Sequence record: NC_042098.1
Reading direction: 5' to 3' (one strand)
Length of the DNA stretch: 64,000 nucleotides
Made by a program: the position numbers and the translations under genes
Shown here: piece by piece, positions 5,281 through 61,189 of the stretch
Numbering within the stretch: the stretch's first letter is position 1
Layout: each line of letters opens with the position of its first letter
The notes under the pieces: generated by a model
What the model was told of the DNA's origin: nothing
The model's input: only the letters and a program-made list of their open reading frames with translations
Database searches by the model: none

Positions 5281-6897
5281 ATGCGGTCAGCATTACTACC
5301 TTTTAACATTAAGATTACTGACTCCAAGCAGATCCCCTGGAGAATGATGCGACCCGTTACGTCGCTCGATATTTACGACGGCCTAACCACTGAGCTGAAC
5401 GATAACGGTCTGTACTCAATTCCCATTTTTGGACGCGTTGGATCGGAAGAACGTGATGAGCGATTTAGCTACATCCACATCAAGTGCGCCGTGTTCCATC
5501 CTGATATCTTCCGGGCACTGACTGCATTAAAGCAGATGTACGCAGGGATTCTCTCCGGTAACGTGTACGCGACATGGAGCGAGGAAGAGAAGGACTTCAT
5601 AAAATCTACCCCGCTTGATGGCGACACCGGTTTTTCCTTCTTTGTTAAACATTGGAAAAGCATAGAATTTAAGCAGACTGGCTCGCCGGCCCGTAGCGAC
5701 AAGATCGCCCTGGTCGAGAAGTTCAAGGATGTGGCCCTCTATCGTAACATCCTGGTCTCACCAGCAGGTATCCGTGAAATCCAGATTGATGAGCGCGGGC
5801 GCACCATCGAGAACGAAGTCAACTCCCTGTACCGTAAGTTATTGTCAGCCGCGAACACCATCACTGATGATCCTTCTGCCGCCGATACCTCACTGTATGA
5901 CTCGGTGCGTTGGTCATTACAGAACCGCTTCAATGAGATCTACAAAAGTTACGCGGACATGCTGGAAGGTAAACGCGGGATCTTACAACAGAAGTGGGGT
6001 CGTCGTCGTATCTTCAACGGCACCCGAAACGTCATCACGGCCGCCCCTATCGGTACAGCCACACTCGGTGCGTTAAACTCCCCGCACATGAATGACACCC
6101 AGATCGGTCTGCATGAACTGGCCCGTGGTGCATTGCCGTTAACCATCCATGGTTTATTGAATGGTTGGCTGAAGCATGTCTTTAATGACGGGACGCGGAT
6201 TCAGGTCATCAACCCGAAGACCCTGAAACAGGAGTCGGTGGAAGTCGACATCCCGACCGTCACCAAGTGGACAACCCAGGAAGGCCTGGAGAAGCTTATC
6301 GCGGGCTTTAAAGATGTGACGTTGCGTAACAAGCCGATCACCATCCAAGGCCGCTACATCGGTTTGGTGTACGCTGACAACGATCATTTCCGGGTGTTCG
6401 GGGATATCGATGAATTACCTGCTTCGTTTAATCGCGAGCTGGTTCATCCGATGACCTACACCGAGTTACTGTACCTGTGTTTGTACCAACGCTGGAACAC
6501 TCTTTATATGCTGGTTACTCGTTACCCCATTACGGGTATGGGGTCGGTATATCAGACCAAAGCGTTTGTGCGCACAACCATCAAATCCAGCGTGAAGATC
6601 GAACTCGATGCCGAATGGAAACCCATTCCTGGCGCGTACGCTACCGCCTTCCCGATTCACGATCGCTTTGCTGAGTTCATGGATTCGCTTTCAGTTCACC
6701 CCAGTCGCCTTGGCTTGCTCGGTGGTGACTACGACGGCGACACCATGTCAGCAACCATCCTGCTCGGTGATGATGTCCTGCGGGAATGTGCGATGCTGCT
6801 CTCACGGCGTGAATCGTACATTACCGGACGCGGCGAGTTCTTGATCGATGTCACCAATGAAACCTTGGACTTTACCCTCAAGGCGCTGACTTCTTAA
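5281..6897 (+). CDS. Virion RNA polymerase beta' subunit, catalytic part (phiKZ gp180-like)
   Basis: N-terminal GLYSIPIFG; LEGKRGILQQKWGRRRIFNGTRNVIT (beta' GKxGR...R.VI region); catalytic GGDYDGD. Likely start is the ATG at 5281 (track start 5257). Confidence 0.92.
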   Translation: MRSALLPFNIKITDSKQIPWRMMRPVTSLDIYDGLTTELNDNGLYSIPIFGRVGSEERDERFSYIHIKCAVFHPDIFRALTALKQMYAGILSGNVYATWSEEEKDFIKSTPLDGDTGFSFFVKHWKSIEFKQTGSPARSDKIALVEKFKDVALYRNILVSPAGIREIQIDERGRTIENEVNSLYRKLLSAANTITDDPSAADTSLYDSVRWSLQNRFNEIYKSYADMLEGKRGILQQKWGRRRIFNGTRNVITAAPIGTATLGALNSPHMNDTQIGLHELARGALPLTIHGLLNGWLKHVFNDGTRIQVINPKTLKQESVEVDIPTVTKWTTQEGLEKLIAGFKDVTLRNKPITIQGRYIGLVYADNDHFRVFGDIDELPASFNRELVHPMTYTELLYLCLYQRWNTLYMLVTRYPITGMGSVYQTKAFVRTTIKSSVKIELDAEWKPIPGAYATAFPIHDRFAEFMDSLSVHPSRLGLLGGDYDGDTMSATILLGDDVLRECAMLLSRRESYITGRGEFLIDVTNETLDFTLKALTS

Positions 6898-43744: not shown

Positions 43745-44398
43745 ATGTCAACCGAAATGACCATTTCTCGTGCACTGGCTACAGTGAAGTCTTTGAATGT
43801 CCGCATCAAAGATATCTCTAAAAAGCAGGTGCTGATTCTGCCAACCGCCGGTACTGGCGACATGCAATCGGTGATCAACAACAGCATCACTGTTACCGAT
43901 GCTGAAGCCGCCATCCAGAATAACTGGAATGCGCTGAACGACATGATCAAAGTGCGTAACGATATTCGTGCGAAGATCATCCTGTCGAACGCCACAACCA
44001 AAGTGACCATCGCCGGTAAAGAATACACCATTGTTGAGGCATTGGACTTCCGCAACTCCCTGGTCGAAAAGAAAGACACGGTTGAGTGCCTGAAGCGCAA
44101 CTACGACTCCACAATGAAAGTTCACCGCCAGCAGGGCGACATCTACGAAAAGCGTTTAAGCGATGTGCGCTCCGAAGCCCTGGCCTCCGGCAAGAAGTTT
44201 GATGAAGCCAGCTTGAAGACCTTCACCGATCCAATCGATGTGAAGATGAAACCAGGCCTGATCGATCCTCTGGGTATCTCAGCAGTTATTGAGAAGCTGG
44301 ACAAAGAGATCGCTGACTTCGAACTTAACGCCGACTACGCGTTGTCCGAATCTAACGCAACGACCAAGATCACTGTTGAACTTGGTAACATTGCTTAA
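43745..44398 (+). CDS. Coiled-coil protein, DIP1984/DUF6847-like (217 aa)
   Basis: MTISRAL...I..SNATTKV...TIVEAL...LSESNATTKITVEL: internal SNATTK repeat and all-helical heptads. Family assignment is from memory of the pattern and needs an HMM check. RBS AAGGA. Confidence 0.6.
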   Translation: MSTEMTISRALATVKSLNVRIKDISKKQVLILPTAGTGDMQSVINNSITVTDAEAAIQNNWNALNDMIKVRNDIRAKIILSNATTKVTIAGKEYTIVEALDFRNSLVEKKDTVECLKRNYDSTMKVHRQQGDIYEKRLSDVRSEALASGKKFDEASLKTFTDPIDVKMKPGLIDPLGISAVIEKLDKEIADFELNADYALSESNATTKITVELGNIA

Positions 44399-44445
44399 TC
44401 CGTATTAAAAGGCTTGTCTTCGTTTGACGAAAGATCAAACACCGC

Positions 44446-44483
44446 CTTCCTATTTGGCCGGATGGAAGTAAAATAACCGGCCA
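44446..44483 (+). ncRNA. H-type pseudoknot 1
   Basis: CTTCC(44446-50)/GGAAG(44464-68) and TGGCCGG(44455-61)/CCGGCCA(44477-83), with A-rich loop TAAAATAA. Confidence 0.5.
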
Positions 44484-44494
44484 GCCATTATACA

Positions 44495-44560
44495 TCTGTA
44501 GGTCGCAGGTTCGATTCCTGTCGGGGTGAAACCCGTAGCTCAGTCGGTTAGAGCAGCAGA
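44495..44560 (+). ncRNA. Circularly permuted tRNA-like module (T-arm, loop-closed acceptor stem, D-arm); Y-RNA/YrlA-like topology
   Basis: TCTGT-AGGTC-GCAGG-TTCGATT-CCTGT-CGGGGTGAAACCCG-TA-GCTC-AGTCGGTTA-GAGC-A-GCAGA: every tRNA arm has canonical length but the halves are swapped. No anticodon loop and no CCA. Confidence 0.8.
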
Positions 44561-44603
44561 ACAACTGCTTATGCTAAAAGCAATGATCTTTGGGATCATC
44601 AAT

Positions 44604-44632
44604 GGTGTACTGTGAGCACCTTGAAATCACAG
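44604..44632 (+). ncRNA. H-type pseudoknot 2
   Basis: GGTGT/GCACC stem; loop CTGTGA(44610-15) pairs with TCACAG(44627-32). Confidence 0.5.
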
Positions 44633-44633
44633 G

Positions 44634-44757
44634 TCTAAAGCTTAAAGCTATAACGTATAATGACTAAAGCTCTAAAGGTTTAAACTTATAACGTTAAAAA
44701 GATCTACACTCCCTGATGACTGTGTTCGTCGGGCTATAACGCTAAAACCTTTTAAAC
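44634..44757 (+). repeat. Degenerate 7-8 nt A-rich tandem repeats (YYWAAAG / TATAACG)
   Basis: TCTAAAG CTTAAAG CTATAACG TATAATG ACTAAAG CTCTAAAG GTTTAAAC TTATAACG TTAAAAAG ... CTATAACG CTAAAAC TTTTAAAC. Confidence 0.7.
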
Positions 44758-45492
44758 AAATCCTGGGTATTCCTCCGCTGTGAGGATGGGTAATGTGGAG
44801 TGTGGTCTGCCACGTATCGCCGCCAGGCTGTCTTGCGGAGACAAGTCTTTCCCTTTTGCAATAGGTGACCTAATGACAGGCACTGCATTAATGATCATTG
44901 AGCAACCACAACCGGAATTCAATATCCCGTTGAGGTCGCCTTATCCTGCCCTTCATGACGTAAGGTTTTCTATGTTCCCTGTTATGGGTGAGCCTGAGAA
45001 CGAAGGGTTTGAACAAGATTCAGAAACTGACGCATTACATTGAGGAGATTCAATCGCGCAGGTTCTTAACCGACTAAAGCCAGGGTGACTTGTGTTATCT
45101 TGGTAAAAGGTGAACGCGTCGTTACAGCGCATACGACTGAATGGGCCGATCCCCCCTTCGGAGTAATATTAGCCCAGATCCATTGCACACCGATAAGTCA
45201 ATGGCTAGCCAGACACACAAAAAAACTATTATGCTTCGACAGATGGTAGGTGCCTGATTACTACAATTCGATTCGATACCTCAACTAAAAGGCGGACACA
45301 AGGGCCGTTATGAGTGAAGCACCAGGAAACTATACCTTGGTAAGGCCCCAGGTTTTTTATCCTTACCAAGGTTCTCTTTCTTTTACTGCCTGATAATGGG
45401 TGGATGTCTTAGTCACCTTTCTTTCACAGAGGCAACAACCTAAGGCGTCTGCCCGCCCTATAACCCGAGTCGTCTAGCGACAAGACACCGTC

Positions 45493-45573
45493 AGACCCAT
45501 TTGGTAACAGCCTAACTTACCTGTTACCCAACCTATGACGGAAACAGGTGGTTCAACTCCACCTCTTGGGTCT
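45493..45573 (+). ncRNA. Second tRNA-like element (7-bp closing stem, 8-bp hairpin, T-arm)
   Basis: AGACCCA/TGGGTCT; GGTAACAG/CTGTTACC; AGGTGG-TTCAACT-CCACCT. Confidence 0.5.
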
Positions 45574-45649
45574 TAGGTATTGGCTTAGGCAAACTCCGTC
45601 GCGGCTTTACCCTCAATAGGCTGCGTTGCGTAAGTCAGTACCGTGCTGT

Positions 45650-45805
45650 GCGTCGTACTCCCTGATGAGGCGCCCGACGTTAAAAGGCACGAAACGGGGA
45701 CAGAGGATACTCCATCGGTGATTGCAATCAACCACGCTGGGGTTTATACAGGCACTTGAGAGACACGCTGGTTTCTCGTTGCCTGTCCCTTTGTCCCGTC
45801 GGAGT
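45650..45805 (+). ncRNA. Type I hammerhead ribozyme
   Basis: Stem I ACTCC/GGAGT; core CTGATGA (45662-68) and GAAA (45691-94); stem II closed by G-C; stem III CGGGGACAGAGG/CCTTTGTCCCG; GUC cleavage triplet at 45798-45800; loop-II CGACG pairs with upstream CGTCG. Confidence 0.82.
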
Positions 45806-46208
45806 CCCTTGCGTTCCTGGAGGGATGACACCGCGTTAAGACTGATCCCCTTAACGAAGTTGCAATAGCCGGGGGGTGTTTCTTGCAAAGGTTACTCACA
45901 GCAGACTGCCTCCGCCAATTGCGGATGGCTTAGGCCCTCAGCCCGTCAGGAAGTTGTCGTTGAATAAATGACAGCTGGACTAGGGTTGCATTATAACCCG
46001 GCAAATGTGCAGCCTGTTTTTTCTTCATGTGTACCTGAACCGGTTCAGGAGCCTACAGATGAGGGAACGACGGGAAGCATATTGCTACCGATCATTTGCT
46101 GTGTGACCGGGCCAAGGATGGCATATACCGGAACCAGTAGTCGTATTCAGCGCAGGTGCGCTTTCTCTTCCTTATCTTGTGGTTAAACCGCACCTGTCTG
46201 GATCATAT

Positions 46209-46237
46209 GTGCCGGGGTCACACCTGGCGCTTATGCC
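46209..46237 (+). terminator. Hairpin plus TTATGCC closing the non-coding locus
   Basis: GTGCCGGG-GTCACA-CCTGGCGC-TTATGCC. Confidence 0.6.
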
Positions 46238-46263
46238 GTCTGAGTTGTATCCTTTTTTACTCC

Positions 46264-46271
46264 TACATTAC
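46264..46271 (+). promoter_or_regulatory. Early promoter motif TACATTAC
   Basis: One mismatch to TATATTAC; upstream of the 46314 cluster. Confidence 0.55.
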
Positions 46272-46313
46272 GAAGCTGATATACCCATCAATTCAATTTA
46301 AAGGAGTTTAGTT

Positions 46314-46736
46314 ATGAAGAACGTTACTATTGCTATTGGTCGTAATCCGCTGTCCAACCAGAAATGGATTCTGGATCAGATCGTGAGTCTGGTGAAGTCC
46401 GGCAAGTCCGACATCTTCATCGTAAATACTGACTCACGGGTTTCCACTGCGGTACTCAATGCCTTGAAAGAGTATACGAAGGATGATGCGGAATACACTC
46501 GCTTGGTTGCTGAGAACGGTGTCATGTTCCACACAACCGAGACCGAAGATCTGCAAACGCTGGATGATGCTAAGATGAACAGCCGCTCGGCGATTCTGGC
46601 CAACATGCTGTTCAGCCTGCCATTGGTCAAACAGTGTCGTGATCTGGCCCGTCACCATGTCCCGGTCTTTGTGAGTGCCACACCTGCCATGTCTGGTAAG
46701 GTGCCGGCTTCCGCCCATACCAAGTTCCTCGATTAA
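46314..46736 (+). CDS. Hypothetical protein (140 aa)
   Basis: RBS AAAGGAG. Confidence 0.78.
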   Translation: MKNVTIAIGRNPLSNQKWILDQIVSLVKSGKSDIFIVNTDSRVSTAVLNALKEYTKDDAEYTRLVAENGVMFHTTETEDLQTLDDAKMNSRSAILANMLFSLPLVKQCRDLARHHVPVFVSATPAMSGKVPASAHTKFLD

Positions 46737-49436: not shown

Positions 49437-50411
49437 ATGTCAAAACGTTTAACCCGCATCTACGCTTGTGGCGGTGCTGCCATCAACATCACCGCGGCGC
49501 AGAAGGACCAGCACGATCAACTGGGCTTCTCTGACCTCAGCGTATCGCGTATCGATACCTCGGATAAGAACATCAAACCAGGCATGTCACCGAACAGCGT
49601 CTACATCCTGGAAAACGCAGACGGTTCTGGTAAAGAGCGTAAGCACAACTACAAAGCGATCGTGGCCTCACTCGAACAGATCCTGGCGATGCACAAACCG
49701 GGCGACTACAACATCGTCATGATGTCAGCCTCAGGCGGTTCTGGTTCGGTCATCGGTCCGGTAATCATTGGTGAGCTGCTGAAGCGTAAGATCCCAGTGG
49801 TTGCACTGGTTGTGGGTACCATCGGTTCTGAAACTGAAACGCAGAACTCCATCAATACCCTGAAGTCCCTGGCCGGTGTCTCTGAAGCCCAGAAAGCCCC
49901 ACTGGTGATGTCGTACTTCCCGGTGAACCAGCACTTCGATCAGCGTGAAGTGGACAAGCAAGTCCTGACCACCATGACGCTGCTGCTCAACCTGTTCGAC
50001 TCGAAGAACATCGAAATCGATTACAAAGATATCGTGAACTTCCTGAACTACACCAACATCCGTAACACCCGCCCTGGCCTGGTTGGCCTCGAAACGTACA
50101 ACGACGACGAACTGCAAACCATCGCTGGTACCTCGCCGTTGTCCATGGCGTCAGTGTTCAAAGATGATAACCGTCCGTTCCTGCCGGTTACCCCGGACTA
50201 CCATGCCACCGGTACCCGTGACCAGGACATGAAAGATGAACGTATGCAGTTTAACGCGCACTATGTCATTACCTCAGCGCCGGTTAAAATGGCGTTCGAA
50301 GATCTGAACAAACGTATGAAGCAGATCACTGATCAGCAGCATACTCGCGGCCAGAACTTCAACCTGCTGGGTGATGGCGACCAGGGTGACGATAACGGGA
50401 TGTTCCTGTAA
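49437..50411 (+). CDS. phuZ: PhuZ phage tubulin
   Basis: YACGGAAINI (T1), IDTS, GSGKER, tubulin signature SASGGSGS, acidic C-terminal tail ending DDNGMFL. Confidence 0.93.
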   Translation: MSKRLTRIYACGGAAINITAAQKDQHDQLGFSDLSVSRIDTSDKNIKPGMSPNSVYILENADGSGKERKHNYKAIVASLEQILAMHKPGDYNIVMMSASGGSGSVIGPVIIGELLKRKIPVVALVVGTIGSETETQNSINTLKSLAGVSEAQKAPLVMSYFPVNQHFDQREVDKQVLTTMTLLLNLFDSKNIEIDYKDIVNFLNYTNIRNTRPGLVGLETYNDDELQTIAGTSPLSMASVFKDDNRPFLPVTPDYHATGTRDQDMKDERMQFNAHYVITSAPVKMAFEDLNKRMKQITDQQHTRGQNFNLLGDGDQGDDNGMFL

Positions 50412-59053: not shown

Positions 59054-61189
59054 ATGAAAACTCCTGAAGGCGAAAACAAGGCACAGGGTCAGCAGCCATC
59101 TGACCAGCAGCAGCCTAACAATTCGGCAATGGGTGATGCGCTACTACAAGCGCAACAGAGGCAGAGTCAGCAGCCACAGCAGCAGCAAACTCCGCCTCAA
59201 CAAGCGCCGCAGTCAGCACCTCAACCAGTGCAAGCAACAACCCAGCAACAGCAACACACCCCACAATTTCATCAGACTGCAGGTAACAGCACCGTGAACA
59301 ACACAACTAACAACACCAACACCGAACAACAGCAGCCGCGTCAGTCACGCATTTACGGCATGAACGAACGCCGTTCTCGTATCTTCGACGCGACCGCGTT
59401 TGGTGAAAACTTTAAGATCGCGCTGGAAGCGACCAAAGAAGTGCTGGAAGGCTACGAAGATAAAGGTTTCAACAAATCTTTCTTCCTGGTTCCTGTTGCT
59501 GACGCAACCCTGCACTGCAATGGCCTGGCGTATGCGTCTGTGTTCAACTTCGGCGGTAGCACCAAAGCGATCGTCTACACCCTGATGCTGGAAAACACCG
59601 GTTCTCCACTGAAGCCACAGCGCGGTAACGATCCACTGACGGGCGAACCGTTTGAGATCCCACGCATGACCGGTTCTCAGTACGACAACACCTACTGGGC
59701 TCGTGTAGCACAGCTGGTCGCGCACCGTGTTGGTAACAACGCAGAAGTGCTGGATGCTGGCGCCTGTGTGGTGCACGCTGAGATGAAGTGGGACGACAAG
59801 TCTGCGATCAAACAGCTGCTGAACAACGCAGAAAACGCCACCATGGCGTATGCGAACAGCCTGTCTGGTTACCGTATCGAACCACCATTCAACATCGCGC
59901 AGGAAGTGGACCCGAACATCGACCGCATCACCGCGGGCTTTAACTTCAATCCACAGCCGCTGTTCACTGTTGATGGTCAGCCGATCCGTAACGACGTCGA
60001 AGTGAAACTGTCTGCTTACGCAGAAGGCGCAGGCCAGGTTCAGACCACCGAAGCCATCACCACCGTGAACGGCTATGTTGAGCTGATCGCTGCACCACAG
60101 CAGCAGATGGGTTATCAGCAGCAGATGATGATGGGTATGAACCCGCAGCAGGCGATGCAGTTCTACCGTCGCTTCTACCCGCAGTTCACCATCACTTCAA
60201 CTGGTACCGGTATCTCTAACGCACAGGGTCCTGAGTTCCAGCTGCTGGCGCTGTTCGCTGCTTCACTGATTGGTGAAAACAGCAACTGGCACCATGCGTT
60301 TGCGCCGAAGATGGTAAACGGTGTCGATATCAACGATATCGGTGCGATCAACTACGAACTGAAAATGGGTCTGGAAAGCCCAGATGACCGTCCGAAGAAG
60401 ATCATCACCAAAGACCACAGCTTCACCACGCAGGCTCTGCATCAGCTGCTGTACACCGCATGCCACGAATCCATGTCAATCGCGATCGACATCGAAGAGA
60501 CCGGCACGCGTACCTGGGTTAACTCCATGCTGCTTCTGGCTGGCGGTCAACCAAACGGTAATGCTGCAGCACTGAGCCCACAGGGTCAGCAGGCGCACAA
60601 AGCGATCATCCAGGCGGCGAACAACCTGACCAACGGTGAGTTCAGCAAACACTTCACCGATCAGAACCAGCTGATTGCTGTACGTGACGGTACCCGTATT
60701 CAGGGTGGTTTCTACGTCTCTAAAGACAACCATCAGAAAATGGATATCCGTAACGTCGACCTGCTGGCGGTTCTGAACTTCGTCGGTGAAACTGATCCGC
60801 GCATCGTGGAAGAGTGGAAAATCATCACCAGCTCTACTTCTGGTATGTCTACTCCGAAACGTGTCGCGCTGCGTCAGCAGAAACTGCAGCAGCTGCTGGG
60901 TGAGTCTTTCGTCCTGAAAGCTTACTACGAGCGTGTAGTGATCAACTGGGCATTCATGGATGCTCTGCGTAAAGCAATCACTGCAGCAGGCCTGATCGTG
61001 CGTCCGGAAAACACCAACATGCAGTACAACGTACAGAGCTACGGCACACCAATGGCGCAGCTGTACGGCATGCCTACCAACATCGGCAGCTCACTGCAGC
61101 AGGGCGCTTACGCAACCGACAACCAAGGTCGCGTAGTGAACATGGCAGCGTTCCGTACTGGTGGTGCATTCGGTACGTTCAACGGCTAA
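59054..61189 (+). CDS. chmA: Chimallin (ChmA), major nuclear shell protein
   Basis: 711 aa with strongly biased codons, directly upstream of nvRNAP beta' as in phiKZ gp54/gp55. Fold-typical stretches (VYTLMLE...P, YPQFTIT, LLALFAA, GPEFQLL) and an aromatic/Gly C-terminal tail. Confidence 0.85.
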   Translation: MKTPEGENKAQGQQPSDQQQPNNSAMGDALLQAQQRQSQQPQQQQTPPQQAPQSAPQPVQATTQQQQHTPQFHQTAGNSTVNNTTNNTNTEQQQPRQSRIYGMNERRSRIFDATAFGENFKIALEATKEVLEGYEDKGFNKSFFLVPVADATLHCNGLAYASVFNFGGSTKAIVYTLMLENTGSPLKPQRGNDPLTGEPFEIPRMTGSQYDNTYWARVAQLVAHRVGNNAEVLDAGACVVHAEMKWDDKSAIKQLLNNAENATMAYANSLSGYRIEPPFNIAQEVDPNIDRITAGFNFNPQPLFTVDGQPIRNDVEVKLSAYAEGAGQVQTTEAITTVNGYVELIAAPQQQMGYQQQMMMGMNPQQAMQFYRRFYPQFTITSTGTGISNAQGPEFQLLALFAASLIGENSNWHHAFAPKMVNGVDINDIGAINYELKMGLESPDDRPKKIITKDHSFTTQALHQLLYTACHESMSIAIDIEETGTRTWVNSMLLLAGGQPNGNAAALSPQGQQAHKAIIQAANNLTNGEFSKHFTDQNQLIAVRDGTRIQGGFYVSKDNHQKMDIRNVDLLAVLNFVGETDPRIVEEWKIITSSTSGMSTPKRVALRQQKLQQLLGESFVLKAYYERVVINWAFMDALRKAITAAGLIVRPENTNMQYNVQSYGTPMAQLYGMPTNIGSSLQQGAYATDNQGRVVNMAAFRTGGAFGTFNG

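Follow-up and report, generated by a model that had tools for sequence, protein, structure and literature searches.

A Pseudoknotted Type I Hammerhead Ribozyme, Predicted to Be Active, in a Structured Noncoding Locus of Agricanvirus Jumbo Phages

The window analyzed here, a stretch of 64,000 nucleotides (nt) from sequence record NC_042098.1, carries at positions 45651–45805 of its + strand a complete type I hammerhead ribozyme with a pseudoknot in loop II. This confirms the central claim of a preliminary description of the same DNA, and all the core nucleotides are found in register. The element is a genuine hammerhead whose fold is under purifying selection, and not a look-alike, because its core is invariant and its helices and pseudoknot covary among relatives. 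Judging from its sequence and context, it is very probably catalytically competent and would make a protein-independent cut separating a transfer RNA (tRNA)-like RNA from the structured leader of the downstream operon. The 1.6 kilobases (kb) around the ribozyme are 100% identical to Erwinia phage vB_EamM_Desertfox (Agricanvirus; MG655268, whose positions minus 124000 give those of the window), at least 99% identical to 15 other Erwinia amylovora Agricanvirus phage records and 81% identical to Erwinia phage AH06.

Architecture of the Ribozyme

By direct reading, the Desertfox element has every one of the 13 consensus core positions and each of the three pairs adjoining the core (all the features of the window described in this text lie on the + strand). 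At the 5′ end, the strand CGUCG (45651–45655) pairs with the CGACG of loop II (45675–45679), giving a pseudoknot of five base pairs (bp) to which G45650·U45680 may add a sixth, in line with the 5–6 bp of the preliminary description. Stem I is formed by ACUCC (45657–45661) and GGAGU (45801–45805), exactly as had been stated, the second strand being the 5′ end of the predicted 3′ cleavage product. The catalytic core C3 U4 G5 A6 U7 G8 A9 (CUGAUGA, 45662–45668) is followed by stem II with its loop (CGACGUUAAAA, 45669–45690), which contains the 3′ strand of the pseudoknot, and then by the second core segment G12 A13 A14 A15.1 (GAAA, 45691–45694). The 5′ strand of stem III (45695–45706) pairs with 45788–45798, with one bulged G among G45696–99; counting A15.1–U16.1, the stem (45694–45706/45788–45799) has 12 pairs, with one bulged G and one G·U, where 11–12 had been proposed. 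Between the two strands lies an insert of 81 nt (45707–45787) folded as a three-way junction, which corresponds to the structured insertion of about 80 nt already noticed and proves to be internally folded and conserved.

The 3′ strand of stem III, followed by U16.1 (45799) and C17 (45800), spans 45788–45800 in a register set by the core, so that the GUC triplet (G16.2 U16.1 C17) occupies 45798–45800. The core-adjacent pairs are C2.1–G1.1 (C45661–G45801), G10.1–C11.1 (G45669–C45690) and A15.1–U16.1 (A45694–U45799), with C15.2–G16.2 next to the last. Scission is predicted between C45800 and G45801; the position, already proposed in the preliminary description, is supported by sequence register and covariation and is still a prediction. 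Stem II is less tidy than had been implied: the closing G45669–C45690 pair holds, whereas the second position is a G·A mismatch accompanied by a bulged C, after which GCC (45672–74) pairs with GGC (45686–88).

Detection and Chance Occurrence

A hammerhead descriptor gave exactly one match on both strands of the window, namely the 45651–45805 element. Only two of 200 dinucleotide shuffles contained any match, even with much weaker stems allowed, which corresponds to about 0.01 expected per window. A chance look-alike is excluded by this single match, by its rarity in shuffled sequence and by the compensatory changes found in nine distinct sequences.

The Rfam hammerhead covariance search suggested by the preliminary description failed as a detector. 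There was no hammerhead call at gathering score in the window, nor at E ≤ 10 on slices of 2.5 kb and 376 nt (45440–45815). Searches of relatives gave no call either: the sole Rfam model with any match, RF02275 Hammerhead_HH9 (clan CL00010), scored a minimal relative, L012, at 10.1 bits against a gathering score of 52 and aligned its core correctly. The failure is attributed to the peripheral elements and the long insert, not to a defining chemical feature.

No second self-cleaving ribozyme was found in the window by Rfam, by the descriptor or by the custom covariance model described below. A second ACTCCCTGATGA at 44709–44720 was considered as a partner ribozyme and set aside as chance, since it is without GAAA or stems and AH06 has ATTCCCACGCGA at this place. 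A literature search for hammerheads in jumbo phages or Erwinia phages returned nothing relevant.

Relatives and Covariation

Pattern scans covered IMG/VR, metagenomes of the JGI and 185,579 species-representative bacterial and archaeal genomes. Two scans of the latter found no copy, the metagenome scan yielded only L012 and one duplicate, and among GenBank phages the ribozyme was seen in Agricanvirus only. Two kinds of relatives were collected. The loci L022 and L053 (the latter from a 287-kb contig) are uncultured Agricanvirus-like contigs, syntenic with Agricanvirus at 67–73% identity, which carry the long stem III insert. Minimal versions are found in five unrelated phage contigs (L005, L012, L021, L034/L038); they have in common with the Agricanvirus form only the 34-nt core, stem II and loop II, and their stem III hairpins are of 3–5 bp. 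Most of the 53 matches to the pattern CTGATGAG..GGCACGAAA were other hammerheads or chance matches, the covariance model taking four weak extras. The relaxed-descriptor match in L006 (189–288), which lies inside coding sequence, and the pattern matches in the coding sequences of L008–L011 were likewise rejected as chance.

The covariance model combined the Desertfox and AH06 sequences with the structure of a hammerhead, leaving the pseudoknot out. It recovers L022 and L053 at 97 bits and the minimal L012, L034, L005, L038 and L021 at 36–46 bits (E ≤ 3e-7), and finds no second copy elsewhere in the window. On 49 control loci it accepts only four weak, pseudoknot-less hammerheads. Pair statistics were obtained from nine distinct sequences in a model-guided alignment, used because MAFFT could not align short and long forms and misaligned their 3′ halves. 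Standard pairs fill 94.8% of the pair cells and 25 of the 48 pairs show changes on both sides, in an alignment that, the pseudoknot excepted, was fitted to the model structure. None of 500 shuffles reached these figures, and slid controls were at most 44% paired, with nine double-change pairs at most.

Although the model did not include the pseudoknot, this helix is fully (100%) paired in the nine sequences, and three of its five pairs are changed on both sides (CG/AU, GC/CG and GC/CG/UA). All five pairs of stem I covary (ACUCC/GGAGU, UUUAAA/UUUAGA, AUUAA/UUAAU, AGUUA/UAACU), and in stem III six of 12 pairs are changed on both sides, with 98.5% of the cells paired. Already between Desertfox and AH06, in which the whole core is kept, the pseudoknot pair G45655–C45675 is replaced by U–A and one A–U of stem III by G–C. 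Stem II is conserved in sequence: its 10.2–11.2 pair is U–A in eight of the nine sequences, AH06 included, and G·A in the Desertfox clade. Furthermore, the core positions are invariant throughout, position 17 being C, U or A and never G; the 10.1–11.1 and 15.1–16.1 pairs are kept in all relatives, and the 1.1–2.1 pair is always formed but covaries. The relatives form a small subfamily confined to phages and are united by a signature, with stem II as UWGCC...GGCAC and loop II as the five nucleotides of the pseudoknot followed by UUAAAW.

Association With tRNAs and tRNA-Like Structures

Most of the minimal relatives are found within or after tRNA genes. In L005 the ribozyme starts 11 nt past tRNA-Met and tRNA-Arg, in L038 it lies 335 nt past a tRNA-Lys/Asp/Met array, and in L021 it stands within a cluster of seven tRNAs; no tRNA is present within the 2-kb contig of L012. 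As a rough control, eight pseudoknot-less hammerheads (L015, L025, L028, L042, L054–L056 and L061) were inspected, and seven of them do not adjoin tRNAs. In L028 (IMGVR_UViG_3300017917_002401), the pseudoknot-less type I hammerhead (6460–6680, − strand) lies 4 nt past the CCA end of a tRNA-Glu. The tRNA cluster of L021, a 110-kb uncultured phage contig, also contains a permuted transfer-messenger RNA (tmRNA)-like gene called by ARAGORN (1764–2181, + strand; tag peptide ANDESFAPLALVA), 540 nt 5′ of the hammerhead of that contig.

In the Agricanvirus lineage, the place of these tRNAs is taken by a tRNA-like cloverleaf, at 45464–45570 in the window. Closed by an outer stem of 6 bp, it combines a D-like arm and a very long anticodon-like arm with a T arm of canonical appearance (AGGUGG-UUCAACU-CCACCU, loop UUCAACU). 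Between the cloverleaf and the ribozyme lies a long, partly covarying hairpin (45576–45642). The region of the two structures folds far better than shuffles (z = −4.5), and in a consensus computed with RNAalifold from four lineages the cloverleaf has compensated pairs in its outer stem, at the arm base and in its T arm. ARAGORN and the Rfam tRNA model made no call on 45464–45570; a “tRNA-Asn” call by tRNAscan has been reported in some sister phages (PMC6690015).

The preliminary description had also proposed that the ribozyme defines the 3′ end of an upstream structured RNA. This is plausible, in view of the covarying cloverleaf and hairpin directly 5′ and of the minimal relatives located in or after tRNA clusters, L012 excepted.

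The Locus and Its Neighboring Elements

The ribozyme sits in an ORF (open reading frame)-poor region of about 1.9 kb between gp202 (43745–44398) and gp204 (46314–46736), both on the same strand as the ribozyme. The sole GenBank annotation in this region is one small ORF about 0.6 kb 5′ of the ribozyme. Nothing is annotated under the core in 15 of 17 GenBank records, and the ribozyme itself is unannotated in all Agricanvirus records. The genome paper of the fire-blight phage group reports no noncoding RNA at the locus (PMC6690015), and a synteny comparison found no equivalent noncoding region in the distant jumbo-phage contig L004, which encodes a homologue of gp202. A Pfam scan of 30 window ORFs identified a chimallin (59054–61189) and a PhuZ-like tubulin (49437–50411), and the window ORFs also encode phiKZ-type virion proteins, a divergent family B DNA polymerase and an RNA polymerase beta′-like piece. 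On the basis of these genes, the source is a phiKZ-like jumbo phage with nucleus-forming phage genes.

Downstream of the ribozyme, an ORF-poor structured leader of about 510 nt (45806–46313) extends to the start codon of gp204 (46314). It is conserved in blocks, at 67–81% overall identity, and hairpins directly 3′ of the cleavage site covary in a three-lineage alignment (for example, GUUAAG/CUUAAC to GUUGGG/CCCAAU). The small ORFs in the leader are not conserved as reading frames, and the leader has no Rfam match. It also contains a palindromic terminator-like hairpin (46149–46162), whose 3′ half can alternatively pair with CCGCACCUG about 30 nt downstream.

On the upstream side, CCUUGGUAAGG and CCUUACCAAGG form a strong hairpin at 45335–45384 that resembles a terminator and is accompanied by a T-run. 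Just after it (~45385), a gene for a P-loop protein of 170–172 amino acids (phrog_2586) is present in AH06, L006/L013, L022 and L053 and absent in Desertfox and RAY, a presence/absence polymorphism within the RNA-rich region. Further upstream, the segment 44497–44560 resembles the circularly permuted tRNA-like domain of YrlA (RF02553), with a T arm, a hairpin-closed acceptor stem and a D arm, and lies in a larger covarying fold (~44430–44690); the acceptor hairpin changes from CGGG/CCCG to UAGC/GCUA in AH06 and L053. The match reaches 44.5 bits, under the gathering score of 69, and concerns only model positions 23–87, the Ro-binding stem (positions 1–22 and 88–114) being unmatched. No TROVE/Rsr protein was found among the 30 scanned ORFs, the remaining ~208 kb of the genome being outside the scan. 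Sub-threshold YrlA matches need care, because the same Rfam model gives about 30 bits in L005 (12555–12623, − strand) where the T arm of an ordinary tRNA is followed by the D arm of its tandem neighbor.

Three local repeats YUAUAACGNUAAAA occur among UAAAG motifs (44640–44750) in the interval that separates the YrlA-like element from the following conserved block; they are partly conserved in AH06 and L053 and absent from the rest of the window. A promoter consensus drawn from the local repeats CTATAACGNTAAAA and the motif TTTTTACTCCTACATTA was discarded, since neither recurs elsewhere in the window.

Predicted Mechanism and Its Alternatives

The region is presumably transcribed from left to right, from gp202 towards gp204. 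The ribozyme would fold co-transcriptionally, with the pseudoknot fastening loop II to the 5′ extension of stem I, and would cut between C45800 and G45801. The upstream product, ending in a 2′,3′-cyclic phosphate, would comprise the cloverleaf and hairpin together with the entire ribozyme, its three-way junction included; the downstream product, starting with a 5′-OH, would carry the structured leader and the genes gp204–gp208. In this way, the noncoding RNA with its tRNA-like structure would be separated from the operon that follows it without the need for any protein. Should RNase P also cut at the cloverleaf, an RNA of about 340 nt would be released. In the minimal relatives, the same ribozyme would act in this manner at the ends of true tRNA arrays.

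Several points weigh against this interpretation. Both the activity and the transcription of the + strand are inferred from the sequence. The Rfam hammerhead models do not score the Desertfox element, and the alignment behind the pair counts, apart from the pseudoknot, followed the structure of the model. In the E. amylovora-phage clade, the G·A mismatch and bulge beside the closing G–C of stem II, where relatives have U–A, could lower the rate of cleavage. The minimal relative L012 shows no tRNA in its short contig. Moreover, the scission site of a type I hammerhead lies at the 3′ edge of the ribozyme, which therefore stays on the upstream RNA as a trailer. This trailer measures about 150 nt in the window, against about 55 nt for minimal relatives, and the cut does not by itself produce a mature tRNA-like 3′ end.

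A possible, if rather doubtful, alternative is that the cut mainly serves the downstream genes, the structured 5′-OH end altering the stability or translation of the gp204–gp208 messenger RNA (mRNA) and the upstream fragment being a by-product. The block-conserved, covarying leader, with a hairpin beginning right after stem I, is consistent with such a role. In L005 and L012, moreover, 200–240 nt with a common leader motif separate the ribozyme from a homologous downstream gene, which in L005 is amidoligase-like. Processing of transcripts to mRNA length by phage hammerheads has indeed been proposed, and a mapped 5′ end has been noted at the hammerhead of a halovirus (Perreault et al., 2011; PMC3088659). 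This role is nonetheless inseparable from the separation of the tRNA-like RNA, being the same chemical event, and it leaves unexplained both the association with tRNAs and tRNA-like structures and the conserved stem III domain, which is kept on the upstream fragment.

The stem III domain itself raises the question of control. The minimum free energy (MFE) folds of the insert agree in Desertfox and AH06 on a three-way junction with two hairpins, IIIa (45709–45743), which has the sequence-conserved loop CAUCGGYGAUUG..AUCAACCACG, and IIIb (45748–45786). The insert is conserved with covariation in AH06, L022 and L053 (helices 5–7 are 86–94% paired, with 11 double-change pairs), and the IIIa loop is nearly invariant at 67–81% overall identity. 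The hammerhead fold can dispense with the insert, since the minimal relatives have none, and the 81-nt domain is a conserved add-on module of stem III. These features could suggest a gated ribozyme, in which a protein, an RNA or a small molecule bound at the IIIa/IIIb loops, themselves nearly invariant in four lineages, would control the formation of stem III and the core. Gating is quite improbable: a stem III of 9–13 bp is stable without the insert and does not obviously need it, no Rfam aptamer matches the insert, and no conserved long-range partner of the IIIa loop was found, the one candidate pairing, AACCAC/GUGGUU with the cloverleaf T arm, being dropped for want of covariation in L022. 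Furthermore, long stem III inserts are tolerated in the hammerhead class, since L028 carries an unrelated insert of 52 nt at the same site, and the one described here may simply be tolerated too.

It is very unlikely that the resemblance to a hammerhead is accidental or that the element is an inactive relic that no longer has a function. The silence of Rfam and the imperfect stem II of the Desertfox clade would fit such a reading, but the core is invariant, all the helices and the pseudoknot are compensated across nine sequences in at least five unrelated phage backgrounds, and the expectation from shuffles is negligible even with much weaker stems.

Finally, the idea, present in the preliminary description, that the cut supplies ends for RtcB-type joining, circularization or splicing of the released RNA is highly improbable: the 2′,3′-cyclic phosphate and 5′-OH of hammerhead products are, by established chemistry, those joined by RtcB, and the YrlA-like element lies 1.1 kb upstream, the YrlA genes of Salmonella sharing an operon with rtcB (PMC7790460), but the only self-cleaving motif in 64 kb leaves no second compatible end, cuts by RNase P or RNase E would give a 5′-phosphate, no RtcB, RNA ligase or TROVE domain occurs in the scanned ORFs, and a terminator-like hairpin, in some strains together with a protein gene, stands between the YrlA-like RNA and the ribozyme.

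Comparison With Known Systems

Among small self-cleaving RNAs, the element has its closest counterparts in the pseudoknotted type I hammerheads, known since 2011. Pseudoknots occur in all three hammerhead types and are required for fast cleavage, and phage hammerheads have been proposed to cut polycistronic RNAs into units (Perreault et al., 2011; PMC3088659). The features of type I are all present here: the consensus core, for which the same study gives C3 U4 G5 A6 N7 G8 A9, G12 A13 A14 A15.1 and U16.1 H17 as acceptance criteria; Watson–Crick pairs adjacent to it; three helices with an open stem I; and a tertiary contact of loop II with the stem I side. As in the hammerheads of that study, the core is identical, the three-stem junction leaves stem I open, a pseudoknot of 5–6 bp replaces the loop–loop contact, the location is intergenic in phages and the processing of long transcripts is the proposed role. 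Unlike them, the present ribozymes have a conserved stem II and loop II of their own (UWGCC-N5-UUAAAW-GGCAC), go undetected by Rfam, are tied to tRNA or tRNA-like genes and, in Agricanvirus-like phages, bear the 81-nt three-way junction on stem III. Read from its sequence, the element would belong to this class, the Rfam score being the only one of the features examined that it lacks.

A second comparison concerns the theta ribozymes, minimal HDV (hepatitis delta virus)-like ribozymes adjacent to phage tRNAs, for which a role in the processing of tRNA 3′ trailers has been proposed (Kienbeck et al., 2024; PMC10879173). In both cases a small self-cleaving RNA lies in cis 3′ of phage tRNA genes, and tRNA separation independent of proteins is the proposed outcome. 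The theta ribozymes, found in other phage groups and hosts, have an HDV-like fold and cut at their own 5′ edge, directly at the tRNA 3′ end, whereas the cut of a type I hammerhead falls at the 3′ edge of the ribozyme and leaves it attached to the upstream RNA. No HDV-like match of Rfam was obtained here, and the nested double-pseudoknot fold of HDV-like ribozymes is absent. The relation to theta ribozymes would thus be that of a functional analogue only.

The neighboring element at 44497–44560 resembles YrlA (RF02553; Chen et al., 2014; PMC4201824) in its circularly permuted and covarying tRNA-like domain; it differs in its score under the gathering threshold, in the unmatched Ro-binding stem and in the lack of rsr/TROVE among the 30 scanned window ORFs.

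The cloverleaf itself is a tRNA mimic inside a longer transcript and beside a defined cleavage event. A similar arrangement is that of MALAT1-mascRNA, in which a tRNA-like structure serves as an RNA processing signal and is cut by RNase P. Unlike in MALAT1-mascRNA, the adjacent cut is here predicted to be made by a ribozyme.

Significance

Existing knowledge of hammerheads is not overturned by these results. What is new is this instance, the subfamily signature, the link with tRNAs and tRNA-like structures and the conserved stem III domain. An unannotated predicted catalytic RNA is added to a group of phages for the biocontrol of fire blight, and a hammerhead subfamily missed by current Rfam models is linked to phage tRNA and tRNA-like genes, in parallel to the theta ribozymes and with another fold. 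The ribozyme also marks a gene-poor, heavily structured RNA locus of about 1.9 kb in a nucleus-forming jumbo phage, for which an RNA processing independent of host proteins may be useful.

A further conjecture, unlikely as it is, would be that nucleus-forming Agricanvirus-like jumbo phages have, in the conserved cloverleaf–hairpin–hammerhead unit (~340 nt, 45464–45800), a stable and dedicated noncoding RNA, with the ribozyme as its 3′ domain and the stem III loops binding a phage or host factor or gating cleavage. If this were true, the ribozyme would be more than a processing site, sealing the 3′ end of the RNA with a 2′,3′-cyclic phosphate, and the locus, taken with the YrlA-like element 1 kb upstream, would amount to a phage cassette of tRNA-mimic RNAs. 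Such a cassette might act as a decoy or an adaptor for host tRNA-directed enzymes and would be matured without host RNases.

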